Notes under the pieces: model-generated | What the model was told of the DNA's origin: nothing | Seen by the model: only the letters and a program-made list of their open reading frames with translations | The model's database searches: none | In this document: piece by piece, positions 3,293-63,672 of the stretch | Position numbering within the stretch: position 1 is the first letter of the stretch | Layout of the letters: each line of letters begins with the position of its first letter | Program-made: the position numbers and the translations under genes | NCBI RefSeq assembly: GCF_001194135.2 | Contig: NC_069009.1 | Span: forward strand, 10,881,412-10,945,083 | DNA from: Octopus bimaculoides | Lineage: Eukaryota | Length of the DNA stretch: 63,672 nucleotides | Direction: 5' to 3'

Positions 3293-3950
3293 TCAGTCTC
3301 TCGTTATTATATTTATAGTTTTCCACCATACGCACACCATCGAATTATGTGGATGAAGATCTTGTTTCACGCGTTGTGTCGCTTGTTTACCGGGGCTAAG
3401 CCATTCCTTACGCTGCTTCATATTCAAGTATAGGCACCATTTTTCGTCGCCAGTGACGATTCGATAAAGAAATCGTTGCTTGTTTCCATGAGTTGAGCGG
3501 TGACGAACAAGCAAGACAGCGGAGATTGTAGCTCGTTAATTTTTGTTGTCACGTAAACCATGGGGACTCGTGCTCCATACTTCTGAACATTTCACATCGA
3601 GTAAAGACGCTTCTCTAAAGCAGTGTCGCAGTTTTCCATTTTTCTAACAGTTCCCTTGTCCTTTGACGAGAATTTCCGTACAAAAGTTGGTTTCATCGCT
3701 TTCCATCCAACTCAACTGGACGGCCAGAACGAGGTGCTTATTTGAGGTCAAAATTTCCATTTTTGAACATTTGCATACCAGTCATGAGCGGTTCTTTCAG
3801 CTATGGCGCCCTCTCCATACACAGTGTAAATTTTGCGAGCATCTTTTGTGGTGTTAGTACCTTGATTGAAAGCAAAATGAAGGAGGTGTCGAAAATGCTC
3901 GTTTTTCTTATATTGACATTCAATTTTAATGATATGAAATTAAACAAAAA
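3293..3950 (-). mobile_element. mariner transposase fragment
   Basis: RFLYRIVTGDEKWCLYLNMKQRKEWLSP (first catalytic D motif); decayed N-terminal HTH upstream; ends approximate. Confidence 0.8.
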
Positions 3951-5685: not shown

Positions 5686-5757
5686 ATATCTGCATGACAA
5701 TAACATCACATATATTCAACGTGGTATCTTCGAAAATCTGATGAATTTAGAAAAAAT
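5686..5757 (+). CDS. LRR exon (72 bp, phase 2-2): [23 protein letters not shown](I)
   Basis: ttttatag acceptor, gtgagt donor, exactly 24 codons matching the xLxxNxIxxIxxxxFxxLxxLxxL consensus. Confidence 0.9.
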
Positions 5758-12747: not shown

Positions 12748-15700
12748 GTGTGTTCTTCCTTCTGTGGATGAGACTGCATTACATTCAGTACAGAAAGATA
12801 TCCGCATATCATTTTCTCTCTCTTTCTTCCGCAACTATTTATATATCTTCCGCTTCTCTTTCTTACTTTTCTGTGGTCTTCCTTTCCTTCTTTACTTCTA
12901 ACCACTTATTTTACAACTTCCTTTATTTCATTATCACAATCATCATTAACGTTCCTATTCTCATCATCACCATATTCTTATTCGCTATTTGTTAAATATG
13001 ACTCTCACTTTTAAATATATATGCGGTATTAAAAAAAGGGAAAAGTGAAACCTGGGCAGACGAAAATGTGAAAACGAACGCTAATGACTGCTATTGATTT
13101 GAAAATATCTACCTCAGTGCGCTGCAGCTTATGGTCAGGAGGTTAACAGAAATACTCAATTAACAATCCCCGAATGCGTTTAATACCCTATTAGAAAATG
13201 GGGAAATTAACAAGCGTCATAAGTCCACATAAAGGTGTCAAAAAATCTCAATTAATTCGACGTGAAATTAGCCACAGCCCTGATCGTTTTGTTGTGATTT
13301 CTTTAAAGACATGCAAGAAAGCTCTCGCAAAACCCCTGCAAATACTTTTCCAGAGCTTCCTTACATATGGGAAACATCTCAAAGTGTTAGAAAAAGGTAT
13401 ATTGATTCAGGAGGAAGTAGACAAGATTCGAAATATTGCAGGTATTTCTCTCAGACCTCACGTGTTTAGAAAGTCATGAGATACATTGTCAGAGTGCAGT
13501 TGATTACGTTCCAAGAAGAAAGCTTGTACACTAACATACGGCATGGCTTCTGTCTACGAAGTAGTTGCCTTATATAGCAACCAGAGCAACGTGGCTGAGT
13601 ACTGAAACACCAGACATGGATGATATCTGGAATATACCATCATCAATATTCAGCCAACTTTAACTAGTCTGTAATTACAATGCTGATGTTTTTAATTGGT
13701 TGTGAATTGTTTAAAATGCGTAGATTTGTAATATAGATTTTTCTAGCTGTGAGAACCTTGTGCTGGTAATGGAATATATATTATGTCATTATTGCCGGAG
13801 TAGACGCTTCATTACTACGTTATGGGTGTTGGAAGAATACCTGATAATGAAACAATGTTGACATTAGTTAGTTCATTATGATGCATATTTTTTCATTAAG
13901 CGAATGTCACAAAAGTTTTGACATTGGCATTATTGTATATTGTAGAATTACAATTTAATTTCAGAATACTTTTTGATTATGATGGTATTCAGAATCAATA
14001 AATGTATCATGTATAACTAGTGTGCTTTACGGTACTTTATTATACTACATAGTACTTTGCTCGTTTTCTAATATTCTCGAATTTAAATAAGATAATAAAG
14101 TATTATTTCCCGTGAAGTAAAATCCAAGTGTCTATGGACTGACACTATGAAAGATATATATTTTTTCTACAAAACCGTTTCAACATGAACATTAATGTTT
14201 GCATATATTTTCAATATGGCCCTCAAAGTTATGAAGTGTTCTTCCGATAAGTGTTTTAATTATTCATGATTTATTTTTCTTCCAATGCTGTCGTTACATT
14301 GCCACTAGAGCATATATTGAAAATAATATTGGTACACAAGATGAGAATATTATGTGAAACAAACATTGTGCATACAACAGTCTCGTTGCTATTTTGTTAT
14401 TCTTATAGCTTATCTTCCATCTTTCGTTACCCGGATATCACAGAAGACTCTCTTCCCACGGGATAGCTAAGTTAGATTTATGGAATCTACTCATATCCAA
14501 ACTATAGGCAGAAAGATCATAGAGAAATAAAACAACTTGCAGTGAACATGAGCTTTATTCGGATAGTTTAGACAGCATATTAACAAGAGAAAAGAGATTT
14601 ATTGACTTTTACGTATTTTAACTAATAAAATATTTGTTTCTTTCTTCCAGGGATTTGAGTAACAACCGAATACAAAACTATGAGGATGGCGCGTTCTTAT
14701 TCCTTCCCAATATTAATTACATGTATGTACAACAAATTTTTCTTTATTGGAAAACCAAAAGTCTTTGTAATCACATAAAAAAGATGCCATCAGACTAAAC
14801 TCATAAAAAGATGTCTTCAAATTCACAGTTATTTAATATAGTTGACAATAAATAGCAATATGTTAGTTTTAATTTTAGGGGGCCAACATAATTATCTTGG
14901 AAGATTTACTTTTCTGATTGCAACGTCGGTTGTCAAATAGAATGAAGGTTGGTTTTATGTACTTAACTTTCATCCAGGCTCGGAAATACGTGGTGTGTTC
15001 AAAAGTTATGCAAAGCATTGGGCACAAAATGTATCAAACCTTTGTACATTTCACAAATTCTATTTAGTGTTATTGAAACTTCTCCTGTTGCGACAGACAC
15101 ACTTGATCCAGAGGTTCTTTCAGTGTTGGTATCAGTTCTGGAACGTCTTCCAGAAAGTGTTACGGAGCTCCGCTGTCGCTGTTTGCGTGGTTTCTTCTCG
15201 TGACTCAGATCGCTTCCCTTTCAGCGTCGTTTTCAGTTTGGGAAAGAGCGAGCAAGAAGTCATGCAGTGCCATGTTCAGAGAGTAGAGGGCCTCCCGAAA
15301 GAGTGGATTAATTGGATTACTTGCATTACGAAGTGCGTTCAAAATCTATTCAATTTTTTTTTGCCAACACGCCTGCCTCAGCGTACCTCGCTCGCGACTG
15401 AGGTTCGGCTATGTTTGAAGTAGTTGTACCACTCCTTCATCCACGTGTTGCCCATGGCATCATCGCCAAGGGCCGGTCGAATCTTCTGGGAAGTTTCAGC
15501 TTGGGTATCACTCAGCCTTTGCTAAAATTGAATGCAATCTCTCTGCTAGATGTATCCGATCATCTTGTGTAAAAACGAAAAACATACGAGTGCGGACTGC
15601 ACGTCTGTACCCTAGGCGTAACCGCTGGAGACTGGCGTAGCCTACTGACGCAGCATATCGACGGTGCGGAAATATTCGTGAATGTGCAGCAAGTGTGGTT

Positions 15701-17783: not shown

Positions 17784-20078
17784 GACATGCAGTAAAAAGT
17801 GGAACTATTACAGAGGGTTAGAGAGAATATGTGTAAGCAAAAGAAAGAGAGAATGAGAAAAAGAGAGAGAAGACAGAGAGAGAGAGAGAGAGGGAGAGAG
17901 AGAGAATGGAGAGAGAGAGAATGGAGAGAGAGAGAGAGAGAGAGAGAGATTAGAGAGAATCGGTTCAAAATGGCAGATGTAAAGAGAGAGGCTCAGTTCA
18001 AGACTGCAGAAGTTTTTAGAGAAAATCCCAGGTAAAAATCTTTTTCCGGTTTCTCCCTTAAGGCGGGCGCTCTCGTCAAAATGTTATAGTGTATGAATAT
18101 CGTTGGTACATGAGTAATGTATGTGTAAATTGTGGTGACAATCGGTTGAAAACTGTAGAAATGCATACGTACTATACACACAGACACACACACATATTTT
18201 GTTATATATATATATATATAGATGCCTTATAAGTTCCCATCATCTAAAGAAGTTAGTCTATCAGCATTCTACATAGATTTGATTCATTTCTTGATAATTG
18301 CGAAATTGATATCCCTTCAAAATAACATGAATTCTTATTTTTGAGCAAATTTTTAATATTTCCTGCCAGTATTATTTGTATATTTATCCACGTGTTTGAA
18401 TAAGGTGAAAAACTGAGATCAAAATAGAAAGTTATATATGATTATCTTATGTTCCTGTACTTGTATGCATTTTCATAACTTCAATGATTTTTTTGTTAAA
18501 AAAAATAACTGTAACTTACTCAGTTCTTCTCTCTAATAAATACATTACGTAGGGTGGTGAGTTAGGTCTGCGTTAATAACTTTCATATCTTCCCTGATTC
18601 ATCTTCCTTCAGATCTTTCCTCTAAATGGGACAATTGGACGCAGACGTATTGGCTATCACTATCTTCTCGATGGATTATTTGGTGGTGGTGTCAAACACA
18701 CATATAGAAAATGAGACAGACCCAAAGACATGAGGAAATATGAAAACGTATTGAAGTGATGAAATAGTTATCTTTCATTACATGATATATAAGTTCTACG
18801 TAACATTATCATTATTAGCACTAAAAATTATGAGCATTTTTATATATCTCTATAAAGCATAAGCTCTGTACATTTTCAGCATTGGTTCATGTCCAACTAT
18901 AAGACCATGTGTTATGTAGGCTAAAAGCAAAAATTTCTTAGTAACAAAAAAAAACTTGTCTAAAACAGCTTTGTTAAACATCAGCGCCACCAAATGGCTA
19001 CCACCAAATGACCACCACCATATGACCACCACCAAAATTCTGGCACCAAATCGTATCTATTCCATGATATAAAGTGGTCAGTTCACATGGCTCTGAAATT
19101 TCTCCTTATTTAAAGGGATATTATTATTCAATACATAAACTATAATTCATTAGTAACTTAACAGTTTCAGTTTCCACCATAACCCATTTCACTTTATTGT
19201 AGTTACTAACACCTTTTAAAACAAAACATGATGACATTACTTCTATACTCTTGTTGCAATTATATTATCCTTCTTTCTTGTCAAATACAACAGGGGCTTC
19301 TTTATACATCTAAATCACATTCACTTAGAGTTTTGTTTATAATTGCAGTGACCTCAGAAATAATAATGATATGATGTGTGAATGTCATCTGCCAGCCTTG
19401 GTCAATTATACGAAGTCAAAGTTCGGCAGAACTGTAAATGTCCAGGGCGAGTGTGAGACAGATTCAGGCAATAACCAAAACAAATTAATACCAATAATGG
19501 AATACTCGCAATGTAAAAGTTAGTAAAACCTTCCTTGTTTTTGTTGTTATTTTATTATTATCACTAATTACATTGGCGAGTTAACACAATCGTTGGCACG
19601 CCGAATAAAACGCTTAGCGGCATTTTATCCATCGTTGCGGTCTGAGTTCAAACTCCGTCCAGGTCGACTTTGCATTTTATCCTCTTGGCGTGGATAGTAT
19701 AAGTATCAGTTGAGCACTGCGGTCGACGAAATCGAATATCCCCCTCCCCACAAATTTCAAACCTTGAGGCTTATTACCACTAAGAAAACTCCGGGATATT
19801 CTCTCCTGTTCACATTATAATGTCTTATGAAACAACACCAATAGATATAAAATAAATAAAGGCTCTATCGTCCACACTTTTCAAAAATCCCTCGCCATAC
19901 ACTTACATGAACGCATGTGCACACGCACACTAACGCATACGCACAGGCAAACACAGACTCATACGGCTTCTCTAATGCACATACACAAGGAATCTATTGT
20001 ACCACACAAACACATCGGCACACACAAACACAATCACTACAGCGCGGACACCCATGAACGCGCACTCATACACCCACA

Positions 20079-24278: not shown

Positions 24279-27200
24279 NNNNNNNNNNNNNNNNNNNNNN
24301 NNNNNNNNNNNNNNNNNNNNNNNNNNNNNNNNNNNNNNNNNNNNNNNNNNNNNNNNNNNNNNNNNNNNNNNNNNNNNNNNNNNNNNNNNNNNNNNNNNNN
24401 NNNNNNNNNNNNNNNNNNNNNNNNNNNNNNNNNNNNNNNNNNNNNNNNNNNNNNNNNNNNNNNNNNNNNNNNNNNNNNNNNNNNNNNNNNNNNNNNNNNN
24501 NNNNNNNNNNNNNNNNNNNNNNNNNNNNNNNNNNNNNNNNNNNNNNNNNNNNNNNNNNNNNNNNNNNNNNNNNNNNNNNNNNNNNNNNNNNNNNNNNNNN
24601 NNNNNNNNNNNNNNNNNNNNNNNNNNNNNNNNNNNNNNNNNNNNNNNNNNNNNNNNNNNNNNNNNNNNNNNNNNNNNNNNNNNNNNNNNNNNNNNNNNNN
24701 NNNNNNNNNNNNNNNNNNNNNNNNNNNNNNNNNNNNNNNNNNNNNNNNNNNNNNNNNNNNNNNNNNNNNNNNNNNNNNNNNNNNNNNNNNNNNNNNNNNN
24801 NNNNNNNNNNNNNNNNNNNNNNNNNNNNNNNNNNNNNNNNNNNNNNNNNNNNNNNNNNNNNNNNNNNNNNNNNNNNNNNNNNNNNNNNNNNNNNNNNNNN
24901 NNNNNNNNNNNNNNNNNNNNNNNNNNNNNNNNNNNNNNNNNNNNNNNNNNNNNNNNNNNNNNNNNNNNNNNNNNNNNNNNNNNNNNNNNNNNNNNNNNNN
25001 NNNNNNNNNNNNNNNNNNNNNNNNNNNNNNNNNNNNNNNNNNNNNNNNNNNNNNNNNNNNNNNNNNNNNNNNNNNNNNNNNNNNNNNNNNNNNNNNNNNN
25101 NNNNNNNNNNNNNNNNNNNNNNNAGGTCACAGAAGTGTGACGAAAGAACTCTGGCCGAAATAAGATTAAGATTAAGATTAATGTAATATAAAGCTGAAAA
25201 AAAAAAAAAAAAATTAACACCAAATATACAGTGCGTGTGTTTTTATTGGCTAAACTGGCAATATGACCATCCCCAAGTACAACAATATATATATATATAT
25301 ATCTTAGAAAGAAAATCATGAGTCACATTTGCTGGCTTGAGTGACATTGTTTTCTATTTATTCAAAAGTGTTTTACTCAGTTCATGTATCATAGCCATTC
25401 CAGCTGCGACCATCCAGTATTAAACTGTGATTTTCGAAGATTACATAATGTAGTATGGTTGTTCTGTCTTGAGAATAAAGTATGTGCTTTCGTTACTATA
25501 TGAGTAGGTCGTGTCACCACATAGAGGCTGCCTCATTAAATCAATGATTATACATTAATATATTCATAAATAATTTAAACCTTTACAGATTCTATAAAGG
25601 TGTTCATTCTACAAAAACATGACCATCTCTTTAGAATTAGTTCTCTTTATTTGAGTTATTCCACAATTCTCGCACTTTGTGTTAGAGCAGAATACAAATA
25701 GAAAATGCCATCAAGTAGCTTCCATATTATTCTTAGTTTAATTTGTGACAAAACTGAAGCAATTGCAAGTGAAAATCGTAACATGCTTTTGTAGTCTTCA
25801 TTAATAATTTTGTTTATATGCCTAACATGTATTGAATGCAACCTTAACACTTTTACATTTGCTTTAAACCACAAAGTAATGTTTTCTTCTTATACATTAC
25901 ATATTTGGTTCCTAAATATGGATATTTTATTGTATTGTATAGATTACTCGTTATTTCAACGGAATTTGCAGTGTCAAACATGTTCAAGGATGATGTGCAA
26001 TGAATCAGAAGTGACAAACTGTACAGGTGATGAGGTAAATTGAAATGTTCCTTTCTTCCTTTTTGTTATAATATACTCATAACCCTCACATAAAGCCAGT
26101 ATGGCCAAGTAGCTTGTACCATGCATTCACAATTGTTTTCGGTGCCTATGTAGTCGCAAGCAGATACAGACATCCGCTCTTTTCCCACATTTGACACAGC
26201 AGAACAACAAGGATTACACATTTAAAGGGAGAGGGGGTGACCAGCAATAAGCTGGTTACACACTTACAACTGAGTAGACGAGCAACGTGAAATGAAGTGC
26301 CTTGTTCAAGAATATAAGGTGCCACTCGGCCCAGAAACTTAAGTGTAGCATCTTCCTTTTCCTTCTTCGACAGAGTTGTAAGTGTGGAGTAATTGTCCTG
26401 GAGTCATCTTGGAAGAAAACCCCGTTACTCAATGACCTCATATAGCAAAATGAGAAATGGTAGCCACCAGCAGGATCAGGGTCTCTGAACTGCACACACT
26501 CACACCCAACTTTGATGATCTTGAAATAGTCTTATCGCGTAGGATTTTCTATTTGAGCGATTGCCTAGCAGAATTATCCGTGAAATCTCCAAATTTCAAA
26601 ATATGGGCAGGTTGGACAACACTCTTTCTGGATGCTGCACAAAGTTCATATGAAATCAAGAGATTCTTATTCTTAAGGTGGTGTCATCAGGCTAGTAGTT
26701 GTGTATGTAACAACAGGTAGAGGACTGTTCGATTTCCCCTGAAATCTGGAAGCTTTGCTATGGGACGATATTTACAAGGGACATTGGGAGCTACATTTTA
26801 GAAATGTAAATATAACGCAGCGAAGAAGTTACTATAATATTGAAAGCAAAATTAAAGAAGTGAGAAAGGTGTTAAAGAAAGCACTTTTTCTTGGTCTTCA
26901 AGGATATCTTGGACGGTGGGGGATGTACATAGATCGTTCCTAGAGGTCCTCCTATATCAGGGGGGCTACATCATTACCATATTTTGTTCTTGTTATTGGG
27001 TTATACCTTGTCTTCGACATCTAACGTGCCAAGGAAGAATCATTTCATGTTCCTTCCTTGAAGTTTATGAATTCTTATGACGTCAACAACGTACAATTCT
27101 TGCTGGTAAAGAATAAAGTTTCTAAAATAAACACAGAAACTCCAAGGAATGTTTGGTCTAATGGTAGAACGTTAATCATGCTTACAAGAAATGTGGGACC

Positions 27201-28861
27201 GAGTCCCACGGGAATCTTTCGACCCTTTCTATCCAAAGAGCTTTTAAACCCAATATTTATACGCTTATGTTTATAACTTATCTACTTCAAGATCTAACGT
27301 CCGAAGAAAGAATATTAAGAATGTTGTTGTGGTCGAGTGGTTCCTCTAAAGAAGTCTAGATCTATCTTGTTTTTCCCATGAAATTCCATGCAAGTATATT
27401 ATGTTTCCATTTTAGAGCTATAGAATATCTATGCAGAAGAGAAACATATTTTTTGTATCCAGTTATTCATTTTCTGTTCCATTTTGATTATCATATTTTA
27501 CTCTTTATTTTGATTTATCATCTTATACGACTGTTCGTACAGTTTGCACAGAAAATTACAGTGTGCGTTCCCCCGAGAACGAAGTTCTGACCGAATTATA
27601 CAGAATTATTATTGTGTGTGTGTGTTGTGTGTGTGTGTGTGTGTGTGTTCTGTGTGTGTGTGTGCGTGCGTATGTGTGTGCGCGCTTGCATGCTTATGTG
27701 CGTCTGCTGGCGTCTGGCGNNNNNNNNNNCTGGCGGATGGGGTGATGACGTCTGACGGAGCGGTATTACAGGCCGTATTTCGATGATCATATTGACACGT
27801 CATCTGAGGACGCTGCATTTATGATACCTCATTTAGATGTAGTAAATTTCAATAGATTTTACAGGAGATAATACAGGGTTTGCAATCATCTTTCAACATT
27901 TCCTTTGTTGTCAGGCGGCAATATGGCAGAGACGTTAGCATGCTCAGCGGTATTCTGTCTGTCTTTACGTTCTGAGTTCAAATTCCGCCGAGGTCGACTC
28001 TGCTTTTCATCCTTTCGGGGTCGATTAATTAAGTAGTAGTGCCAACTGGGGTCGATCTAATCGAGTGGTTCTCAACTTCATTCTGGCTGTGGCCTCTTCT
28101 AAATCAATGCGAAATCGTTATGGCCCCTATGCTAATTTAATTCTTTATCTCCATTCTGTTCCTCAACTTAACGCATCTAGAGAAGTAGAATGAAACATTC
28201 AAAGTTGTAGTTTTGCATCAAACATCCACCCCAGTTGTAAATTAAAAAAAAAAAACGTTAAATAAATATTTCATTGAAATAAATTTATTTATATTTACGA
28301 AGCAAAAAATAACAATTTCAATTTACATTTCCTGATTTCAATGGTGTCCCTGCGACTGATGCTGGGTTACCAACTTATCAATGTTTGGTTTCAGAGCCGT
28401 CAGTGTGAGACGTATATCTCCTCTTCTTTCTACGTCAAGGCGATTTCGAGACATTGACAGCAGACAAATTACCCGACTGAAACCTAACTCAACTAAATAA
28501 GATGTGGGAAAAGCGAGTAAAAGCAACTTAACGTTTTTACAGAGTAATGGGTACTTTTTAGAGATCACTTCATTCATCCACAGCTTCTGGTATCCTCCAC
28601 ACTCGGACCCTGCTAGAGCTGCTGTGTTATTTGAAGTTCAATGAAGCGTTCTTATATACTCTTTTACTTGTTCAGTCATTTGACTACGGCCATGCTGGAG
28701 CACCGCCTTTAGTCGAGAAAATCGACCCAAGGACTTATTCTTTGTAAGTCTAGTACTTATTCTATCCGTCACTTTTTGCCGAACCGCTAAGTTACGGGGA
28801 CGTAAGCGCACCAGCATCGGTTGTCAAGCGATGGTGGTCGGAAAAACACACACACACACAC

Positions 28862-28926
<65 letters not shown>

Positions 28927-31900
28927 CATATACACGACTGGCTTCTTTCAGATTCCGTCTACCAAATCCACTCACAAGACTTTGGTCAGCCCGTGGCTAT
29001 AATGGAATAGTCTTGCTCAAGTTGCCACGCAGTGGGACTGAAACCGGAACCATGTGGTTGGTAAGCAAGCTACGTACCACACAGCCACTCTTGCGCCTTT
29101 ATCAATATAGATTTCAGATGGATCAACATCGAAGGGATCCACAAACCACTGCGGCACCATTATTTGCAGTAGATCAGAGAAGCGAATTTCCATATCATTA
29201 TGTAACTGCTTCAAATGATCAACAGAAAATGCCAAGTCATCATCAGGCAGCTCGATGGATATGCTTGCTCAGGAAGAAACCTGCAAATTCCCATCTTTCA
29301 AGATTCAACCGGAATAACTTAGTTTCCCGTTGACGGTTTTAATTTTCTCTGTGTAAGAAAACAGATTTTCTCTGTGTAAGAAAACAGATTCATTGCTAAG
29401 GACATTTATCTTTTCAAGTATGTCACACAAGTAAAAAAAATTCCCTTTGCATCAGGTTTCTCTCCAAGTTCTGTATCACTCGAAAAAGTGCAACAAAATG
29501 ATGCAGGCAATTGCCCTTCGGTATCCATCTGACTTCAGTATTCAACACAAGTCGTTGAAATTCCTCGTCGTTATTTTCAGATAATTGATTAAAGAGGTGA
29601 TCTTGCAGTGCATTGTTTTTCATCAAGTTCACAGCTTTGATAACATTCATAAGTGCATCACACAATATCCTGCTGTATGTTTGGCAACCAGATGCTGTGG
29701 ATGAAGAACACAGTCCACGAAAAGCACTTTACATTCGGAACAATTTTTTAAGTGAGCACGGTATCTCCGATATCTTGCGATCATAGCAGCAGTGCCATCT
29801 GTTGCACAAGCCACAATGTTCTTCAGTGGAATGTTGTTCTCTTCAAACTAGGCCTCGAGCTTTTTGAAGATGGATTCCCATTTCGTACCGGTCATTAATT
29901 CTTGACATATATCATTATGAAACCTAACAAATGCTGTTAAAATCGCAGAATTATCAGGTGGGAGTTGAGTCATCTATTTGCAGTGAGAAGTCATTTACCT
30001 TAAGTTTTGAAATTAATTGGCTTTCAACATCAGCTGCCATTTCATCAATCCGTCATGATACTGATGAGTCACTCAGAGGAATAACACTAGCAACATTTTG
30101 TGGACTCTGATCCATGACTGTTGGGAGTACTACAGCCACTGCAGGTATGATCAAAGATTCACCAATAGTGTGAGGCTTACCAGTTTTTGCAACTGAATTT
30201 GCTATCTTGTAAGACGCCCACATTCCTCTGTCTACTCTTGCTGCTTTTTAGTGAACATGTGATCCACTGTCATCCTTCCTTGAAACTCATCACGTAACCT
30301 TTTGAGGAAATCTAGTGGCTTGTCTCTCTTATCTCTATGTGCAATCTCCAGATATTTTTTTTTCAGTTTGCCGGAACGCATACTTTCATTTAAGAACGAA
30401 ATCTTACATAGCAGACGCATAGGCGTGGTAGAATTTTGTGGAATTTTAATGAATCCATAAGCACGTATTCGTCAGAATACTGTCTACACTCTTTTGAGAT
30501 GCACTTGCCAGGTTTATCTGAAATAAATGTTTTCAAAAAAGTTGAATAAACAAGAGAATAGTTTTAAGTGTTTTCGTCAGAATTGAATACAGAGTAATGT
30601 AAATCAATATGCTTTTTTTATCCGAGAATACAATTGGATCTAAAACCAAGTTTATACAGTTAATACATTACGCAGTTAACTAAATCAAAGGCTTTTAATA
30701 ATCAGAAACAACAGAGAAGATTTATGCTTATAAAAAGATAAAAAATATCAAGACAAAGGTTCATCGTTCCCTTTTCAGTTGACAATCCAGAAAGAAAATT
30801 AATTTGGTGAAAAGAAACTAAATTATAAAGGTGATAGCTAAAGCAAGCGAGATGGAGAAAATAGGACTGGCCTATTGTTGAATCAAACTCGAATGGCGAA
30901 AAGGAGTTAGCGAAGTATATTGAAAATGTATTTTCACTTTTAAAGAAAAATGATTTTATAATATATTTTGTTATATTCTTTTAAACATAGTTCAATATTA
31001 AATTTTACTCTAATTAAATTAAGTATATAATACTATTCAGTGACCAATTATTGTATTATTAAATTGATTAATAATTTAATAGTTGTATAAAAGTGCATAT
31101 AAGAGTGATGTTATCTAATTTTCTAATGAATTGTTCGTTTGTTTGCAGGGTACCCTCGGCCTCTTACCTCCCTCTTGATTGCCCATCTTAGTTTGAATTC
31201 TTCTCAAAGCCCTTTTTAATTATAGTTATTTTTTAAAAATAAATCATATACTCGTATGTGAAGAAACAGTTTTCCTGAGCGCTTGGGTCCAATTTGAATG
31301 ATTGATCAATGATTTAACTTGGCGGATCGACCTTTTCTCCCTCGCCTGTGACGCTATGGACTTAGATGGAATATTTATGATATTTGAAGTAACGTAACAA
31401 CTTAGGTAAAATGAAGTAAAAACAAGTAAACACTTGCACACTAACAGCGCATAAAAATATAATTTAACAAGCAGATAAAGAATCAAGAGCAGAAGTAGGA
31501 TGAAATAAGCAGAGAAAGAGAGAAAGAAGTGGTATAATTTCACAAGGCAAAAAGAAAAATGAATCGTAAAGTGACTTGTGCGGATGTTCACCAGTTAGCA
31601 TGGACATTGTTGATTGGATGGATTTTCTATGTCATCAATAATCTTGAAGTGGAGGTTTTTATTAATACTGGTCACTTAGCTTTCCGCGATGTCCATTATG
31701 TATGTATGCCTTGTAGCATTAAAATTTTGGAGCAATTTGGTATGATGCAATGATATGTAGCTGATCATCATACGAACCAGACACACAGCACTCATAATCT
31801 AATATTTTAACATCTGTCCTTTAGGTACATATATGAGTGTAATAGAAAATTACCTCATAATGATGACCTGTTGGCACTCCGTACGCTTACGACGTCGAGG

Positions 31901-33924
31901 GTTCCAGTTGATCCGATCAACGGAACAGCCTGCTCGTGAAATTAACGTGCAAGTGGCTGAGCACTCCACAGATACGTGTACCCTTAACGTAGTTCTCGGG
32001 GAGATTCAGCGTGACACAGTGTGACAAGGCTGACCCTTTGAATTACAGGCACAACAGAAACATGTAGTAAGAGTGAGAGAAAGTTGTGGTGAAAGAGTAC
32101 AGCAGGGTTCGCCACCATCCCCATGCCGGAGCCTCGTGGAGCTTTAGGTGTTTTCGCTCAATAAACACTCACAGCGCCCGGTCTTGGAATCGAACCCGCG
32201 ATCCTATGACCGCGAGTCCACTGCCCTAACCACTGGGCCATTGCGCCTCCACTAAGGATGACCAATTATAATTATAAGCGCATATAAACGTGTGTCTTAT
32301 CTGTATATATGTAATGTGCATTTTACAAATAAAATACGTACCTACATGTTAATATTTTATGATTCCCAAATTTTCTCTGCCGTAGTATCCTGTTGCTCCC
32401 TATTTTTCAAACTCAGCTTTGTGACCCCAAAGAATGTTTCATGCCATCCTAGGGGGGGGGGGCATATGGCTCCAATAGAGAAAGCTTGATCTAATCGACC
32501 GGACCCCTCTTTGTGCCTAGAGTAGAAAAGAACATTTCCTTAGTTGTCTTTTGATAATTTTAAGAGCAATGACTAACCGTTTATCTCCTATGTTGTTGTC
32601 GTTGAGGTACTAGTATATGGTGTCTGTGTTTATTGTTACAGCCTGTATGCCGCATGAAAGTATCAATCGATGGTGTTACACTGAAGTTTGAAAAATCCTG
32701 CAGCACATACCGAAAATGCATTGATGCTATGACAAGCAATATCTTTACATGCAAAAAATGGAAGAGTGGATCTTCCTGTGTTGCTTGTTGCATCGGAAAC
32801 TTATGTAATAAGAACGATTTCATAGGTCAGTGTTTTTTATTTTCTGATATAATTAAACCTGCTTTATTACAGATGAAAGGTTAAACACATTTAAATAGTT
32901 ATTGTATCTTGCTTACCTTATTTACCTGTTTCAGTCATTAGACTTCGACCATGCTGGGGCACCGCCGTAAAGAATTTTAGTCGAATAAATCAACCCCAGT
33001 TCTTTTTTAAGCCTGATTTTTATTCTATCTGACTCTTTTGCTGAACCACCAAGTTAAGGCTTGCAAACAAACGAAGACCGGTTTTCAAGCGGTGATAGTG
33101 TGACAGATACAGACGCAAAGACAGACACAAACATGCATATATATATATATATATAACGAAAACATTTGAGGGATTGCAAACAACACCAAGTGCAGGTAGA
33201 AACATTGCAACTTTTAAATTTTTAAAAGTTGATGGTCAAGCCAAAATGATCACAAACTGTGTGAAATGCAGAAACAAGAGATTGAAAGTTCATTTCAAAG
33301 TGACTGGCAAGGTTGAAATGGTAAGCGTATAAAGGATCCCTAATGAGTGAAGTAAAAACATTTGTTTTGGATTTCACCCTGGACAGATTAAAAATATTCC
33401 CTGTTGTTTGATATTTTATGTAGATATTCTCATTGGAGTTTTGAAAAGCGTGTGACAGCTCCCACTCTAGGTTGCAAAAAGGGTGGGTGCATCAGGATCT
33501 GCTTGCTTTATACCATTTTCCAGGGCAAAGATATTCACAGAGCCTACCACCAAAATTAACCTTAACCTTCACATCTTAAAGCAAAGCCGTCATCATATAC
33601 ACAATTTTTGGGGGCAACTTATTTACATTAGAATTAGCCACAGAGCATTTCAATTAACAGTCTTGAATGACTTGTTTAAATCAATAAAGAAAAGGTAATC
33701 TAGACTCAGAACTACATCTACGAATTCAAAGGTCGGCACAAGAATTTGATGACTTGGAGTCACGCTTTTGGCATCAACGACATATAAATAACAACACAAA
33801 ATTGGCTCTTCACAAATCGTTTATCTTACTATTCCTGTTGTATTCTTCTGAAATATGTACGTGTTATGAACGACATTTCAAATTGTTAGAACAATTTCAC
33901 CAAAACAGCCTTCGCATGGCAAGA

Positions 33925-34940: not shown

Positions 34941-36652
34941 ATATAACAAATACGGGATTATATTATCAATCACAACAATTGTTTCGCCACATCTTGCATC
35001 GACTCCTCTTGTGGGACAGACTAAAACTGGCTCAGGAGTATCTGGTGGTACAGACGTATTAATATGTTTGGGTAAGATCCAAGGATCAAAGTGGGGGAAA
35101 TTAATGAGCTTCAAGCAATCCGTAGAAGAAGTAGAAAAAGCAACTTTTGGGAACAGACATGGTTTATTGGCGCAGATGGTTGTGATGTTTTCTCGTATCC
35201 AAATACAATAAGTTGAAAAAAGTTTATCTTTTTAGATTATGGTTAGCAACAGTGGTTTTTGCAGATGCGAATAAACATCCAAAATTAAGGGAATGGTGAA
35301 GATAAAATCCAAGCTACATATGTATCATAGCTAGCAGAACCTCGAAAGTAGTAAATTAGCCAAACGAGGGGTTGACTGCAAGTTACTTTTCAGGAAAAAG
35401 ACTTTCCAGTCCTTCGAATTATATTTATACATATGTTTGCACCCACTGAACATTTCAGACCTAAATTTCAGTAGAGAGTTAGGGATCCTAGAAATGAAAA
35501 GGATTTGTGCTCTTTCAGCTAAACATAGGCTACATTTGTTTGATCCAGTAACATACCATGTAGATTTCTGAGTTTCTGTTCCACTTAAACACATGCGTTC
35601 TTTTGTTAGCTTGCAAACTCCAACATGGTTAGCCAACCTAGTAGCCTTCCTTTTATTCTTATGTCGGAAACGTTTATAAATATATTTAGAAGAATTGGAA
35701 AATTCCGCCTATCCCTTATTACCTTGCTGATATCTTTCCACCCTTGTCATTTAAGGACGAAGGGGATAACTCTTAATTTCGTTACTTTTTACTTTCTGCA
35801 TTTTAGTTTAAAAGATTTCGTTTTTCGGTTCCGTTTTCTATTTCTTTTAACCTTCCTCGTTTTTTATATGCTTCCTTCTCAGCTTTTTCACGTTTTCTCT
35901 CTTATTCAATTTTATTCATTCGTTATGATACATAGTTTGTGCCTGAAGAATATATTTGTGATCTTTTCCATTATATGAATCGATTAGTAGCACATAAAAT
36001 ATTGTGTCCTTTAAATAAATAATAAATGTGTCTGTGTGTATGAAGATGTATTTACGTGAATGTGCATTTATGTGAAATATACTGTGTGAGTAGATGCGGA
36101 TATATGGCTGTTCTCTAATCTATGCGTGTTTAGGAATGATGGTTTATATTTATGTAAGCGTGCGTGTGATTAAATTGATGTCATTTCTGTCGGATAAAAT
36201 GTTCTGGTTTCTGATTAGAACGATTATTCTTCCGTTAGAAACTTTTGCCCAACTAGCAATAGTAAAGCTGTAACCCTAATAAACTAGGTAACCTTTTACA
36301 TATTTCTCATGCTCCTTTGTCCTCTATAGTGTCTATGTGTCATGAACAAAAGAAATGTAATCGTGTGTCGTTCATGCATTTGACGGTTGTGAATCCGTTT
36401 TCAGCTTCCTCGATCTCAATAAAACTCACCTCATGTATCTCATTTATTAAAGCAAACATTCTCTTCCATTTTTATATCCTTATCTAGGCTGGAGCAACAC
36501 CTTTGTATTTCATCTGATTTTCAATTCGACATTTAAGAAGTTCAATGAAAACATATCTAGAGTTGTGAGTAGATATTTATTTTCTCCCTCTCATCCTCTC
36601 TGTCTGTCTGTCTCTCCCTCTTTCATGCGCGCAACACACACATATGTAAGTA

Positions 36653-39600: not shown

Positions 39601-42600
39601 TTAACAGTTGGAAGAAGGCAGTCTGTATCAAATGCTTCTTCTGTCTGTCTCCACACATATACTCGACCGGTGGTCGGAAATAAGGTAACAGATGAGTCGT
39701 CCGAGAAAATAACATTCTTCCACTGCCCTAGGTAACATTTCTGTAGGTTTTTGCTCCACTCTACACATTTTGCAACGCTTCTTTTTGAAAATAGTCGTTT
39801 TCTGATCGCAGCCCTCCCCTGAAATCCGGCTTTATGCAGCTCCCGGCAAACAGTTTTCGTGGAAACTGGGTTCTCCAGGTGGTCATTAAGCTCTGCAGTA
39901 ATTTTGGGAACTGTAATTTTGTGATCCTTTCTAACAGTTCGCGTAAGAGTCCGACCATCTCTATCCGAAAGTTTCGGTTGTCTTCCGGAGTTTTGATTTA
40001 ACGGGGAGGTTTTTCCCTCTTTCTCAAAGGCTGTCATTGCTTTCGGACAGTACTTCTTGATACACCAAATTTTCGGCTGTTTTCGTTACGCTAGCGCCTG
40101 CCAGAAGATCACCAGAAAATTTGACTTCTGTGAAAGTCCAATAGGTTTGTCATTTTAATGAATTTTAATTACCTTTTGCTGATGATATCTAAAAAGAAAC
40201 AGCAATTTTAGCAAAATATATTAATCAACACTACTAATAAATAAAAAAAAAGATAAAAACAAACAAGCTTTTGACGGTTTTACAGATATTTCAAAATTAT
40301 GATGCCATGATCCTAGTGGTTTCCATTATATTGTCCAAAACCTGTGTATATTATATGCATGTATAAAACTATTGCAGATAGAGCATGAATTATCAAACCT
40401 GACAGGAACTTTCGAAGTGCAGTATTGTGGGTAAGAAAAATGCTATTTACCACTTTTCTTCAAATACTGTTTATTCTAGGTCAAAGTATTCCCATGTTTA
40501 TTTTTACTGTATATATTAAATATTACAATAACTTGTGATCCATAATATACTGATTCATGAATTCAATCAAATGTTGAGCTGTATTAATATTATTAATATG
40601 GCAAACAGACTTACATATAGATGTATAGAATGGAGTACGAGGGATGTTCATTAAAGATTTCCTGTGACCCACTTCTGTTTATTGCAGGAAACGGAACTTG
40701 TAAAGCTACAATCATATATGCCTCCATATGTCACATTGTAAATTATAGCTTTCCACTAGTATTCGTTTGTCTTTTACGACTGCTGAAGAGGACTAGTCTG
40801 TTATAATGGAGGCAGTTCAATGCGGATCAGAAATCAGATGCTTATACTTGAAAGGACGTACAACAAAGGAGACTTTCGATGAATGGGGTTTATGGGGACG
40901 ATGCACCATCATACAACTTAGACAATCCTTGGCATCGCCTATTCAAATGTGATCAGACATCGATGGAAACTGCTCCTATTCCTGAACCACCACATCCCGT
41001 CGTCCATGGCGACAACATTTATAAAGTGGAAGTTACCGTTTTGGAGGATCGACGCATAACTATTTGGCTGCTAGCCTAAGAAGTGAAAATAAGTGTAGGG
41101 TCCACGGAAAAAAACAAAAACTCATTCACGACCATGTTCACATATGGAAGCTGTCTTCACGATGGATGCGCATACCTTTTCAGAAGCAGGAACGAGTCAA
41201 TTGTTCTCAGGCTCTTTTGCCATGAAAGCGAGGACATTTTCGGCAGACTTATCGCACAGGATGAAGAATGGATCCATCACTATGATTCTGAGACTAAAGT
41301 CCAGACGAAGCAATAGAAGCATGATAACTCATCTCCTCCAAAGAAGGTGCGTGCCCGAGCTTCATCAGGCAAGGTGATGCACACATTCTTTTGGGGCGCG
41401 CGTAGTGTAGAGATGACTGATTTTCTGATAAAGGGCACCTGAAATAGCGGGGCATATCATGCTTACACTACTCCAGAAATTGCAAAGAGATGTGACATGC
41501 TGAGCAAAGGTGTCCATCTCCTCCAAGTCAATGCTGCCGTTCACAATGCGCCTGTCGACCATCTGAAAGAGCTCTCCTGGGGCTATGAAATCCTTCATCA
41601 TCGCCCTGACTCACCCGACCTCGCACCATCTTATTTCCACACCTCGCCAAAAACGAGGTCTTTTTCAAAGGGGCAGTGTTTTCGGATGATGATGAACTCA
41701 TTTCCGAGTAAGTCTTGGCTCTAGATGCAACCTATAGACGTCTAGAGACGAGATCTTCACAGCTGCTTAAAGCAATGGGAGAAGTGTGTCACGATTGAGG
41801 GTAGCTACGTAGGGAAGGACTAATAATTATAGCAAGTTTCGTTTATCCCACTGTTTGGGAAGTAGGTCAGAAGATATCTTTAATTAACACCCCTTGTACA
41901 TATGAATATTTGTGTGTACATATACGTTGATGCACCTGTCATCATCGGCAACATCATCATAATTTCATGTCTGCTCTCTGCCATCGTTTGACGGTTTGAG
42001 AGAAATCGAGAAAAATCCGATGTCTGTCTTGGCATGAATTCTACGGCTTTACAGAGTGCGGTTTACCCAGTGTACTAGGAGCTCATCTTGTGTCCCGATC
42101 ATCAGAGAGGCCACCTTGAAAGTTGAAAGACTAAAGAGACTAAATATAATTGAGATGTATAACATTATTTGAACCTATAATACACACACAGACACATCCA
42201 AACACACAGGCAAGCACGTACAAATACACAGACACACGTGACTAAATTGACTAATTTCCTTGTTTTGGACTCTGCCTTTTGAAATGAGTTTGGTTATAAA
42301 AAGCAGAATCCAAAGTCAGCACCTCCCGTCATGGTAAAACCGAGCAGGTTAGACAATTTTATCAAATATATATAGAGAAGGATAGAGAAAATCGAGTGTG
42401 TATATATGTGTGTGTATGTGTGTGGGAGAGGAGAGAGAGAAATGAAAAGAGAGAAACAGAGAGACGAAGAGATAGGGAGAAGGTGAGAGGGAGAAAGCGA
42501 GAGATAGAGGGTTATCTAAAACACAATTTGGCATTTTCACTCTATAAACTATTATGTGTCATAAGTTTACCCACATGCCAACGCCATTCACCAAGGCTTA

Positions 42601-43293: not shown

Positions 43294-46204
43294 ATGTATG
43301 TATGTATGTATACATGTATGTATGTATGAACGTGTGTATGTATATTTGTATGTATGTATGGATAGTCTTAAAGCCAGGAACTTTTCAGTAACCCCTCGTA
43401 ATACATTCATCCATGCATCACAAGGCAGACAAGATTTATTACAAAAGTGTCGATTCATGCGATTAAAAATTCTTGAAGGCGGTGCCCCAGCATTGCCGTA
43501 GTCTAATGATTGAAACAAGTCAAAGATAAAAGATAAATTATTGTTTGATGTGTCGGGTTAGTTTTCGTTACAAACATCAAATTATCTGAAGTTCATTACT
43601 ACATTTGAGTTTGAGTGTATATAGTATTTTCGTATGTAGAATGTGTGTAATAATAATATTCTACTAGCGGGACCCGTGAAAAATTCACAGAAAACAATAA
43701 TGTAAGCATCTGTAAATTCTGTGCTGGTGCCATTAGAAATGTTTCCATATGGTGTCTCTTACAGAATATAGAAAGAAGTGCAAAACCGATAACTATGTGT
43801 TAGAACCAAAATATCTCAGTAACGTAAATGTAAACAGAATTACTATTTAGCCTTAAAATAAACCGTACATATTCAAAGAACCTTCCTAATTTAGTGGTAC
43901 ATAACGTCCTTCTGCTATTCTTTTACTTACCACAGTCATTTGACGGTGGCCATGCTGTAGCACCGCTCCTTAGACGAAGAAATTGACACCTGGACTTATT
44001 CTCCGTAAACCTTGTGGTTATTGTTTCACTCCCTTAGGCCGAACAGCTAAGTTACGGGGACGCAAACACACCAGCGTCAGTTGTCAAGTAATGTTGGTGG
44101 GGAGACAAACACAGACACAGACACACACACGTATATATATATATATATATATATATATNNNNNNNNNNNNNNNNNNNNNNNNNNNNNNNNNNNNNNNNNN
44201 NNNNNNNNNNNNNNNNNNNNNNNNNNNNNNNNNNNNNNNNNNNNNNNNNNNNNNNNNNNNNNNNNNNNNNNNNNCTCTTCTTTAAAGTATAGAGTTCAAT
44301 TACGTGTAGCCACTTCTTGACAACTTTTCTCCCGCACCCGTTTCATAGGGGCTCTTACCCATTTTCTGGGCTCTTTTCACAGCTATACTCCTTTCGAAAT
44401 TTACATTAATTATTGTACGAAAAAGAAAAAAGAAAGGCATTCCTCAATAGCCTGAATCGTTGCTATTTCAATCTTCCTACTTGACCCCTTCAGTGTTTTA
44501 AAGATCACTGTCCTTTTGGTTACATTGCTTGTGAGTACCTCAGGCGGCGTCAATTTTAACGTGTTTCACTCCTTTTTCAATAGTTCCTCACATTCTTTCG
44601 TCTTCCTTGTCTCAGCCTTTACTTCACGAACCTCCAAAGCTTCAACCTCTATTCCTCTACCAGTTGCTGCCGCATAACTGTGGCCTCCTGATGGCACTTT
44701 CTCCATCTTTCCCACGAAAAGAAACAATTCAACAATAACATAACAGCAATTTCAACACTAACAGCACCGGGGAGACCTTCAACAAACATTTAAAAAGGTG
44801 ATTTACATCTAACAGAAATCAAATAACTCTACAAAGTTGACACCCACTCTCTAGAAATGCATATGAGGCCTTTCTCTATCTGCAACATCCATGCGTATTT
44901 ATACATTTCAGAACCGTTCATTTATCTATTTACGGGTGTGTTCGGATTCCACCACAGGACCATCAAACGAGTTAGATTCCCATGTAATTAAAAGATCTGG
45001 GGAGTGTTGTTGAAACCTATTTCATTTAAAATTTCTTTTTAAAATCCTATTTCAGCTTCGAGAAGAATAGTGAAGTATTTACTATTACTTGCACAGTACC
45101 ACGTACAATTACTAAAGACCAAATTTTTAAACAAGTTTTCGAAACTTTTAAAACATCACAGACTTTGCGTGATTTGGGATTTCAAGAACGGAAAATGGAT
45201 TTAATTGATGAAAGTAAGTAGTGTGTTTCGTGTCATTTCTATCTTCATAACAATCATCAGTGATGTTATCACCACTATCACCATCATAAAAATCATCAGT
45301 GATATTATCACCACCATCATCATCTTCGTTGTTGTCGTCGTCATCCTCAACATCATCGTAAAAAGGTGATGCTATTACACACACAAACACTAACTCGCAC
45401 ACATCTATTTTTGCACCGTTTTTGAAGTCGAAATAACTTTCGATAAATCAACAATTTATTTTGCAGTTTTCTTCGTTGGAATTTCTACCACTCGACACTC
45501 TCAGCCGTTTCTTTTCCTCATTTTACTTTTGATTACACAAATTAATTCAGGCCATAACCGTTTTCTAGTTATTCTGTTTACGTCTAAGTCTTATGGACTT
45601 ACAAAATCAACGTAATATAACACTGTGCTGATGACACCTATAAAGGCAGAAGCTCGTTCCAAAATTATTTTTGTTAAAGAAAATTAATTCAAGAATTCTA
45701 GATTTTCTTGGGAGAGAAGTATCCATCATTCTTTTACAAGACTTCCAAGAGTGGTGGACAGGACGGAGAGAGATATCAAACTGAAGATGCATTCTAAATA
45801 ATTACAAGAGATATTTCTGCTCCATTAATGGCATCCAGACTGTCAAGTAGAGGCATTTACTGGCTGATGTTTTGTTTCTATTAACCAAAGAGGTCATTCT
45901 GGAATTTGAACTCAGAGAGTATAGTGCGGGAAGAAGTAGCACAAAGTATTCTCTCCCATCAATCCAATGCCCTAAAGTGGTACATTTTTATAACCTTGGA
46001 AAGAATGAAGATCAAATGAACCTCAGCCGTGTTTGAACTCGGAGTTCAGAGAGTAGGGACAGATACCACGAGGCTAACAAGTCTGCCAATCACTGCCTTC
46101 GGACTGCTTGAGTTATGAGATATCTCCCATTTTTATTTGGAGTCAAAATCGCTGCTAGGTATTTATTTAGCTCAGTTTAAATCGACGTTTAATTCAATAA
46201 ATCA

Positions 46205-48992: not shown

Positions 48993-49027
<35 letters not shown>

Positions 49028-61224: not shown

Positions 61225-61380
61225 CACATCAAGTAAGTAATAAGAAGCACCAAGTATCGTTGACTAATTATGCTATGTAATTTACCCGTTAAATTAAAAG
61301 AAAAATTTGAAGATGGACCTGCTTCCGTATTCTTTGTAATCGTTTTGGATTCACACACCTGAAAATTCGTGTGGGTGTGG

Positions 61381-61454
<74 letters not shown>

Positions 61455-61714
61455 GTGCATACGTACATACATACATACATACATACATCCATACATACAT
61501 ACATGTGTGTGTGTATATATGGTTTTTGGTAAGCAGTATCGATTTTTTACAATTCTGTAAATAATAATCCTGGAATTTGATGGGAGGGAACTAATGGCTT
61601 ACATTGACTCTGGTGTTTCACTGGTACTTAATTTGATGACCCTGAAAGGCAAAGTTGACCTAAGCGGAATTTGAGCTCAAATTTCCCCATACTCTCCAAT
61701 GCACTTTTTTAGCT

Positions 61715-62620: not shown

Positions 62621-63672
<1,052 letters not shown>

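Follow-up and report, generated by a model that had tools for sequence, protein, structure and literature searches.

A predicted Lynx2-type three-finger domain encoded by a symmetric exon pair within a leucine-rich repeat adhesion G protein-coupled receptor family of octopus

On chromosome CM046629.1 of Octopus bimaculoides (assembly GCA_001194135.2), a stretch of 63,672 nucleotides, hereafter the window, contains two exons that encode a twelve-cysteine domain and that stand in frame between exons of an adhesion G protein-coupled receptor (aGPCR). That the domain is a Ly6/uPAR (LU) three-finger domain of the six-disulfide Lynx2/LYPD1 type, and that it is embedded in the receptor, we judge jointly to be very probable. 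The function we propose for it, a protein-binding surface whose engagement would be read out through the aGPCR, we place at about even odds. Blending the figure for identity and embedding with that for function gives an overall confidence of roughly 0.7. The LU feature and its receptor exons all lie on the forward strand of the window; below, related proteins carry P numbers, and loci and contigs carry L numbers.

The LU exon pair

LU exon 1 (25943-26034) encodes the head and loop I of the domain with four cysteines, entering in phase 1 and leaving in phase 0, and LU exon 2 (32642-32825) encodes loops II and III and the C-terminal CCxxxxCN motif with eight cysteines, entering in phase 0 and leaving in phase 1. 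The acceptor of exon 1 (tgtatag/AT) follows a pyrimidine-rich tract and its donor reads GAG/gtaaat, while exon 2 is bordered by gttacag/CCT and ATAG/gtcagt; both exons have canonical splice sites and open frames. In the frame of the LQCQTC motif, the first two bases of exon 1 complete a codon and its last base falls on a codon boundary, and exon 2 starts on a codon boundary and ends with one surplus base. The spliced peptide is stop-free, contains 4 + 8 = 12 cysteines, and begins (N) and ends (G) at split codons. Codons split at the junctions agree with those of relatives (A/AT encodes Asn, as in QN-YSLF of P0002, and A/TG encodes Met, as in DEMFC of P0005).

The first-pass annotation of this DNA had described two exons encoding a 12-Cys domain with phase-1 introns on both flanks, and on re-reading the splice sites its coordinates, cysteine count and outer phases proved exact. 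The phases around and within the pair are 1, 0 and 1. The upstream neighbour (19349-19518) exits in phase 1 and the downstream neighbour (from 36488) enters in phase 1, and the cassette is therefore a symmetric 1-1 unit. LU domains are typically encoded by two exons with phase-1 introns on their flanks (Leth et al., PMC6600238). The layout seen here is thus the standard LU gene structure, and the cassette would have inherited it from the LU family. Because the window peptide matches two Octopus sinensis proteins (E 5.9e-37 and 9e-36 among 5.8e9 sequences) and the 12-Cys framework recurs in 31 related sequences, the LU exons are far beyond chance.

The intron between the two exons (26035-32641) holds an N gap, two kinds of microsatellite, (TG)n and (AC)n, and the remnant of a transposon. 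The gap (27720-27729) directly follows a (TG)35 microsatellite within the 6.6-kb intron, and since the frame is set by the splice junction and not by continuity across the gap, the reading frame is untouched. A gap-free colinear locus in O. sinensis (L001) has the same two exons 3.1 kb apart, and its introns are 79-82% identical in DNA sequence to those of the window. All homologous proteins, including one translated from a 1155-codon open reading frame (ORF) on contig L004, pass directly from "...C.G.E" to "PVC...". Because the homologues are uninterrupted across this junction, no hidden exon is expected in the gap, and the uncertainty that the gap introduces is limited to intron length. Apart from the gap, the intron's only notable contents are the microsatellites and the transposase-like remnant.

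A three-finger domain of the Lynx2 type

The identity of the domain was approached through a family profile and a structural model. A profile built from alignment A2, comprising the LU segments of 20 family members, was searched against all Protein Data Bank (PDB) sequences. Its top match was human LYPD1/Lynx2 (6zss; E 3.5e-5), aligned over the whole domain with the cysteine residues in register, and LYPD6, muscarinic toxin-like protein, SLURP-1 and ALK2/TbRI followed in that order. Identity between the octopus domain and LYPD1 is about 22%. Within alignment A2, the 12 cysteine columns and the final Asn are each at least 90% conserved. The LU consensus, consisting of eight head cysteines, an N-terminal xxCxxC and a C-terminal CCxxxxCN, is found in the window peptide, the N-terminus of which reads LQCQTC.

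An AlphaFold2 model was built on the LU segment of a paralogue, P0001, at 70% identity (BLASTP) and with the same 12 cysteines; the window's own LU segment was aligned through the exact exon translations together with P0001 and P0002. The P0001 model (predicted local distance difference test, pLDDT, 72; predicted template modeling score, pTM, 0.65) contains two beta-hairpins, the second of them followed by a helix, and a final strand. A Foldseek search of the PDB with this model returned Lynx2 as its best match (probability 1.00, TM-scores 0.63/0.68, root-mean-square deviation 3.1 A), and three-finger proteins made up all 50 of the 50 matches listed, with TbRII, Prod1, uPAR, LYPD6B, GPIHBP1, snake toxins, PSCA and Lynx1 among those after Lynx2. 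Neither outcome that the first-pass annotation had named as refuting its reading, a non-LU fold or an independent small gene, was borne out. Together with the LYPD1 profile match, the model bears out the earlier suggestion of an LU/three-finger fold.

Lynx2 has four invariant head disulfides and extra bonds in loops I and III, as well as a long helix that extends to the head from loop III, and the extra loop I and III disulfides also occur in LYPD6/6B (Paramonov et al., PMC7582953). Numbered from Leu1 of LQCQTC, the extra cysteine pairs of the window peptide, C6/C11 and C60/C69, align with C6-C15 and C66-C75 of Lynx2, and the predicted disulfides would be 3-26, 6-11, 19-43, 49-72, 60-69 and 73-78. 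The sixth disulfide that the first-pass annotation had proposed thus fits the pattern. It is not unusual, however: because the extra pair aligns with Lynx2, it is a known trait of the subfamily, already present in Lynx2/LYPD1 and LYPD6/6B, and carries no novelty.

A receptor exon chain around the cassette

The exons surrounding the cassette were assigned by mapping relatives onto the window and reading splice sites. Upstream, two candidate LRR exons of 24 residues each (5687-5758 and 10050-10121) have approximate bounds; the first, bounded by high-scoring segment pairs, gave weak tblastn matches to LRRs of seven family members, and the second gave weak tblastn matches to family LRRs. The last LRR exon (14652-14723; 24 residues, bounds again approximate) matches P0005, P0008 and P0016 at a tblastn E of about 1e-5, and Pfam LRR_8 at E 0.0014, under the cutoff. 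It precedes an LRRCT-like exon with four cysteines (19349-19518; phase 2 in, phase 1 out), defined by its sequence and splice sites, that is 74-76% identical to the N-termini of P0001 and P0002 and that follows the LRRs in all full-length relatives.

Downstream of the LU pair lie exon D (36488-36564; 26 residues, phase 1 in, phase 0 out), which would encode the first strand of a ferredoxin/SEA-like module and whose motif is kept after the LU domain in most relatives, exon E (40378-40430; 18 residues, phase 0 in, phase 2 out) and exon F (45056-45213; 52 residues, phase 2 in, phase 1 out). Exon D was at one point suspected to be spurious, since it is missing at the colinear O. sinensis locus and, ending in phase 0, does not fit the phase of the HormR exon; it was accepted because exons E and F restore the frame and the motif is conserved family-wide. 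Together, exons D, E and F encode a module of about 95 residues that is phase 1-1 like the LU cassette. An AlphaFold2 model of the P0005 copy (pLDDT 88) has a beta-alpha-beta-beta-alpha-beta topology. A Pfam scan of this module found nothing, and Foldseek returned only generic ferredoxin-like folds without singling out SEA, so that the module may be called ferredoxin/SEA-like by topology and position only.

The chain continues with the first half of a HormR/HRM domain (50444-50558; phase 1 in, phase 2 out; half-domain Pfam HRM E 0.033) and a seven-transmembrane (7TM) exon (56702-57091, approximate bounds) that covers extracellular loop 2, transmembrane helices (TM) 5 to 7 and the start of the tail. 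P0003 and P0004, two proteins from this locus or its haplotig, both carry Pfam 7tm_2 (E 2.6e-21 in P0003); by tblastn the exon is 96.6% identical to P0003 over the aligned part, and it is identical to P0004 up to the splice point. The last coding exon of the NCBI model P0004 (57904-57954) adds 16 residues and a stop codon. From LRRCT to HormR, the phases of successive exons are consistent throughout (2>1, 1>0, 0>1, 1>0, 0>2, 2>1 and 1>2). Thus, we infer that the LU exons would be joined into one receptor chain at this very locus. The deduced order of the complete protein would be signal peptide, LRRNT, LRRs, LRRCT, LU, ferredoxin/SEA-like module, HormR, GAIN/GPS and 7TM.

LU and 7TM domains in single proteins of relatives

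A word-indexed homology search, which is insensitive here, returned two matches for the peptide and five for the family alignment, each of them a short fragment. When 1.84e9 representative proteins were searched with a profile of LRRCT plus LU, 34 matches came out, and every named one is molluscan. A Pfam scan was then taken over nine long profile matches. Five of the nine combine LRR_8, the LRRCT+LU match, GPS and 7tm_2 in a single chain, namely P0019 (XP_052827273) and P0021 (XP_014788728) from O. bimaculoides, P0024, P0025, and P0036 (KAL8620952) from the gastropod Nucella lapillus. The others are partial: P0009 has LRR, HRM and 7tm_2, P0015 has LRR and HRM, and P0016 and P0032, the latter from Argonauta hians, have LRR and GPS. 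Pfam HRM was detected in P0009, P0015 and P0010, and GPS matches in relatives reach E 1e-13 and similar values.

P0024 derives from the uninterrupted 1155-codon ORF of L004, a 4.2-kb contig assembled from run SRR21372857. This ORF runs from a signal-peptide-like start and LRRNT through to the 7TM domain, and it is transcript-level support, in a relative, for the LRR-LRRCT-LU-HormR-GPS-7TM architecture. P0019 has a canonical GPS cleavage site and tethered agonist (CSCNHL/TSFALLM), and P0049 reads CSCDHLTSFAILM at the corresponding site. With in-frame neighbouring exons in the window and full-length or transcript-derived relatives, the earlier claim that the LU domain is embedded in an adhesion GPCR holds.

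The affiliation of the receptor core is mixed. The best PDB sequence matches of the P0019 HormR-GAIN-7TM core are ADGRG2/ADGRG6 (E 2e-68 and 2e-65), yet Pfam matches to GAIN_ADGRA3, computed beforehand, are recorded both for P0019 and for the neighbouring O. sinensis model. NCBI names one paralogue ADGRA3 and several members ADGRG6 or ADGRG2. An ADGRA-like architecture was considered and set aside, as the best solved matches of the core are ADGRG2/G6 and an Ig domain was not seen.

An octopus-specific aGPCR expansion, "group 3", has been described that combines LRR domains, one Death domain and clustered genes, and that is expressed in axial nerve cord, sucker and skin tissue (Ritschard et al., 2019, PMC6408891); Ly6 and LU domains have zero occurrences in the text of that paper. 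The window lies on a chromosome bearing further paralogues of the receptor family, and by its domain set (LRR, GPS, 7TM and Death) and its octopus-specific, clustered character the window gene would fit within group 3. One O. bimaculoides paralogue, represented by P0021 and P0040 (XP_014788728 and XP_052821851), carries a Death domain in the cytoplasmic tail (Pfam E 3e-6 and 1e-6, respectively), which is unusual in an adhesion GPCR; it agrees with the one sequence for which Ritschard et al. (2019) mention such a domain.

Genes of this family are already in RefSeq, where one fragment is auto-named "ly6/PLAUR domain-containing protein 1-like". N-terminal fragments of the family (P0005, P0008, P0011, P0023, P0028, P0052 and P0053) go under names such as "slit homolog 1", "decorin-like", "chaoptin", "LINGO-like" and "LRRC15-like". 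Three "decorin-like" isoforms (X1-X3) from the window's chromosome stop just past the LU domain with differing tails, and are either truncated soluble isoforms or gap-broken models. The analysis shows many RefSeq entries to be N-terminal pieces of a single aGPCR family, which bears on counts of gene-family expansion in cephalopods.

Behaviour of the cassette among paralogues

The first-pass annotation had seen in the 1-1 symmetry a unit suited to shuffling, and paralogues agree with this view. In the P0019 gene (L005), which lies on another chromosome, the LU exons are flanked by the same phases. At the P0030 locus (L006, O. bimaculoides CM046628.1, 2001-5109), the LRRCT exon is joined to exon D through a gap-free 2.8-kb intron in which no LU exons are detectable; because this intron is free of gaps, the cassette is absent at the genome level in at least one member. 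The L006 gene, with a model of only 105 residues, may be a pseudogene. Protein models P0028 and P0031 show the same join of LRRCT to D, and in other models LU passes straight to HormR (P0012 and P0022) or to GAIN (P0011). Some of these module-skipping models are probably annotation artefacts, and such joins are what frame-neutral 1-1 modules allow. We suggest that exon shuffling would have brought a standard two-exon Ly6 unit, and with it the LU domain, to its place between the LRR cap and the membrane-proximal domains. Since one paralogue lacks the cassette, the family offers a clean natural example of 1-1 exon shuffling.

Proposed function and alternative interpretations

Several observations weigh against reading the window as an aGPCR with a functional LU domain. 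First, Pfam models of LU, toxin and activin-receptor domains all score under their curated cutoffs: the window peptide gives Activin_recp at E 0.045 (15.2 bits, cutoff 20.9) and CD59 at E 0.55, and among the 20 family members Toxin_TOLIP, Activin_recp, UPAR_LY6_2 and CD59 appear, all below gathering cutoffs. Second, the fold model is that of a paralogue and is of moderate confidence, and disulfide pairing is not readable from it. Third, the second half of HormR, GAIN/GPS and TM1-4 were not found in the window when peptides of the O. sinensis locus served as queries for the second HormR half and the first GAIN exon, and full-length paralogues for the remainder of GAIN and TM1-4. No annotated database protein contains the window's LU exons, the nearest being paralogue P0054 (73-88% identity), and the colinear O. 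sinensis gene is split by NCBI into a 151-residue LRRCT-LU model and a 265-residue HormR/GAIN model. Fourth, the DNA identity of LU exon 2 with O. sinensis is 79%, no higher than that of neighbouring introns (79-82%), and the O. sinensis orthologue (L001, CM016866.1, 14153-14242) has Gly in place of the third cysteine (SGFTGKES versus SRMMCNES; P0002 and P0022), such that 11 cysteines remain and the predicted loop-I disulfide is broken. Exon 2 being conserved at the intron level and the third cysteine being lost, constraint on parts of the domain is weak. Finally, the binding function and the signalling route are what we infer.

One alternative is that the window copy is a decaying or truncated paralogue, either a pseudogene or an N-terminal-only gene, in which the LU exons are real and lie outside a working 7TM receptor; we regard this as unlikely. 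It would explain why the HormR second half, GAIN and TM1-4 exons are not found between 50.6 and 56.7 kb, why the sole annotation is a 122-residue fragment, and why the same-chromosome LRR-LRRCT-LU "decorin-like" X1-X3 models end soon after LU with different tails, and it agrees with an LU dN/dS of 0.5 and with the intron-like pace at which exon 2 diverges. Inverted duplicated exon pieces also occur here: copies of the HormR-exon region (51269-51093, reverse strand) and of exon F (55142-55071, reverse strand) stand beside N gaps, and are either local misassembly or a genuine inverted duplication within the gene. Against decay, frames stay open, splice sites are canonical and phases match in the exons with defined bounds from LRRCT to HormR and in the 7TM and tail exons. 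Relative to L001, dN/dS is 0.27 for LRRCT, 0.70 and 0.46 for the two LU exons (0.50 combined), 0.22 for HormR and 0.36 overall, albeit over few sites. In addition, the 50.6-56.7 kb interval, where the missing exons are expected, contains nine N gaps of estimated length. An unplaced contig of the same assembly (LGKD02101539.1, L003, 2258 bp) matches window positions 56660-57054 with its positions 1864-2258 at 99.5% identity and is probably a haplotig of this locus. About 1.4 kb upstream of that match, at 288-470, it carries a TM3-4 exon, which by distance falls in the 580-N gap of the window (55193-55772). Because the missing stretch coincides with the nine gaps and L003 supplies the TM3-4 exon, incomplete assembly is favoured over decay, and we retain the embedding of the LU cassette in an aGPCR.

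As to function, we propose that the LU domain would serve, together with the LRRs, as a protein-binding surface of the receptor's N-terminal fragment. Among octopus paralogues, the cysteine residues and the STYRKC and GNLCNKN motifs are conserved, and the most variable columns are runs beginning in loops I and II of the cysteine framework. This pattern would fit a stable scaffold with diversifying binding loops, and the variable positions may tune partner specificity. Engagement of a partner could then exert force or a conformational change on GAIN, exposing the tethered agonist and triggering G-protein signalling, the usual course in aGPCRs.

Alternatively, instead of a trans adhesion surface, the LU domain might be a cis modulator built into the receptor and acting on its 7TM domain or on a nicotinic-type or chemotactile receptor, a role we consider distinctly improbable. 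The coupling to a Cys-loop receptor that the first-pass annotation had put forward is likewise speculation, as it was there. The closest solved relatives, Lynx2 and LYPD6, act on nicotinic acetylcholine receptors (nAChRs; PMC7582953, PMC8494132), the LU protein Bero has been reported as a GPCR cis-ligand (bioRxiv 10.64898/2026.06.29.735401), and suckers and axial nerve cord are among the tissues that express the receptor family (PMC6408891). However, the domain sits far from the membrane, behind the ferredoxin-like module, HormR and GAIN, and the partners of LU domains are very diverse, so similarity to Lynx2 does not predict a target. A related idea, to which we give only a slim chance, is that the cassette acts as a built-in "prototoxin" that would dock in cis either on the ectodomains of the receptor itself or on some partner, a channel or another receptor, in cells of the suckers or nerve cord. 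Octopus nAChR-derived chemotactile receptors could be named as an example of such a partner, and the nicotinic link is speculation. If this were true, the coupling would be switched on or off according to whether a paralogue or isoform includes the cassette or has lost it, and the mechanosensing of an adhesion GPCR would be physically linked to ionotropic chemosensation.

A further alternative concerns the binding surface that we propose only at the level of its subfamily, since LU and activin-type domains belong to one three-finger superfamily (PMC6600238). It is very improbable, in our view, that the module is a TGF-beta/activin-receptor-type ectodomain and not a Ly6/uPAR domain. Activin_recp is the top weak Pfam match of the window peptide and reaches E 0.0008 in one of the 20 members, the TbRII, TbRI and ALK2 ectodomains are among the Foldseek and PDB matches, and those receptors likewise end in CCxxxxCN and hold the fold within a transmembrane receptor. 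Nevertheless, LYPD1 is the best match both by sequence (E 3.5e-5 versus 0.17 for ALK2) and by structure (root-mean-square deviation 3.1 A versus about 7 A for TbRII). Lynx2 (PMC7582953) also shares the LxCxxC at the N-terminus, the disulfide of loop I and the complete spacing of the 12 cysteines, the exons are arranged as the two-exon unit of LU genes, and the relatives have HormR, GPS and 7tm_2 downstream, with no kinase, whereas an activin-type receptor would have a single TM and a Ser/Thr kinase there.

Finally, an independent small Ly6-like gene, either instead of or besides the receptor, is scarcely credible: P0001, P0002, P0054 and P0055 are annotated as short LRRCT + LU proteins (151-160 residues), but these NCBI models are fragments, as the Met-Met with which they begin is internal to the LRRCT exon, with an acceptor and further open frame upstream, they lack a signal peptide, and P0002 ends in intron read-through (IGKRCLFSYIR), while the LU exons have no in-phase start codon of their own and no hydrophobic tail resembling a glycosylphosphatidylinositol (GPI) signal after the CN motif, and longer relatives and one transcript carry the same sequence inside a receptor.

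Other features of the window

The window contains 24 N gaps with 8033 N in total. Locus L002, reached through the model P0004, corresponds to window positions 46777-63672 at 100% identity, gaps included, and P0004, a 122-residue 7TM fragment, is the sole NCBI model at this locus obtained from LU and 7TM queries. Positions 1-21178 of L002 (window position 46777 to the end and beyond) are also covered on the forward strand by a gene model of 1076 residues that spans the whole 3' part; it has no Pfam match on record and is absent from the results of the LU and 7TM queries. At the 3' end, a forward-strand array of C2H2 zinc-finger repeats with HTGEKPY linkers (62579-63660) is spread over several frames, and presumably represents a frame-broken member of the expanded ZNF genes of octopus. 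Transposable-element remnants, with classes assigned by eye, lie at 3-482, 3296-3535 and 29423-29665 on the reverse strand and at 41080-41721 on the forward strand; they comprise an ORF resembling reverse transcriptase where the window begins, pieces of mariner-like transposase and, in the LU intron, a hAT-like fragment.

Comparison with known systems

The domain itself has close counterparts. Human LYPD1 (Lynx2, 6zss), LYPD6 and LYPD6B are likewise single LU domains with 12 cysteines in the same order and at similar spacing, and LYPD1 shares the N-terminal xQCxxC, the C-terminal CCxxxLCN and the helix after the second hairpin. Unlike the octopus domain, which is internal to a receptor of about 1000-1300 residues, Lynx2 and LYPD6 each have a signal peptide of their own and are small and GPI-anchored; this stand-alone format is not what the window encodes, where LRRCT precedes the domain, the ferredoxin-like module and HormR follow it, and no signal exon is present. 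Those proteins act on nAChRs or, in the case of LYPD6, on LRP6/Wnt, activities that the octopus domain is not known to have. At the gene level, the cassette resembles the canonical Ly6/uPAR unit of a signal exon and two LU exons in having two exons with phase-1 flanks, and differs from it in that no signal or GPI exon is adjacent, its neighbours being LRRCT and the ferredoxin/SEA-like module.

Several aGPCRs resemble the remainder of the protein. ADGRG6 (GPR126) and ADGRG2 are the best PDB matches of the HormR-GAIN-7TM core. ADGRG6 has a SEA domain before HormR, the position of the D-E-F module, and its N-terminus is CUB-PTX where the octopus family has LRR-LRRCT-LU. ADGRA2/ADGRA3 (GPR124/GPR125) and Drosophila CG15744 share N-terminal LRRs and LRRCT followed by HormR, GAIN and 7TM. 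Between LRRCT and HormR, however, they have an Ig domain (PMC2571103), whereas the octopus family has LU and the ferredoxin-like module at that place, and no Ig domain was seen in Pfam scans of its members. The group 3 receptors of Ritschard et al. are similar in that their paralogues are co-localised, and their mix of domains matches P0019, P0021 and others.

Two further systems place a three-finger domain at a signalling receptor. The TGF-beta/activin/BMP receptors are the only documented case of a three-finger ectodomain in a signalling transmembrane receptor (PMC6600238), and they give weak profile and fold matches to the octopus domain. They are single-pass Ser/Thr kinases with the three-finger domain as their sole ectodomain, in contrast to the octopus protein, where it is one of several modules, is nearer to Lynx2 and is followed by 7TM. 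Drosophila Bero, acting on AstC-R2, is an LU domain that works on a GPCR at the cell surface (bioRxiv 10.64898/2026.06.29.735401). Bero, however, is a separate GPI-anchored protein that acts in cis on a class A peptide receptor, whereas the octopus LU domain is covalently part of a class B2 receptor.

A 2019 review recognizes LU domains as secreted proteins, as GPI-anchored single-domain and multi-domain proteins and as TGF-beta-receptor ectodomains, and lists none in a GPCR (PMC6600238). Ly6, uPAR and three-finger domains go unmentioned in a large 2026 review of adhesion GPCRs, and our literature search for an aGPCR with a Ly6/uPAR/three-finger domain in a single protein found no paper. With four known LU formats and the aGPCR review silent, a Lynx2-like LU domain in an LRR-bearing aGPCR would therefore constitute a fifth. 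What is new is the context, an LU domain as a previously undescribed module of a mosaic, LRR-bearing aGPCR; the layout of the LU exons and the sixth disulfide were already known. The architecture is conserved from octopods to at least one gastropod and has been multiplied in the octopus-specific aGPCR expansion.

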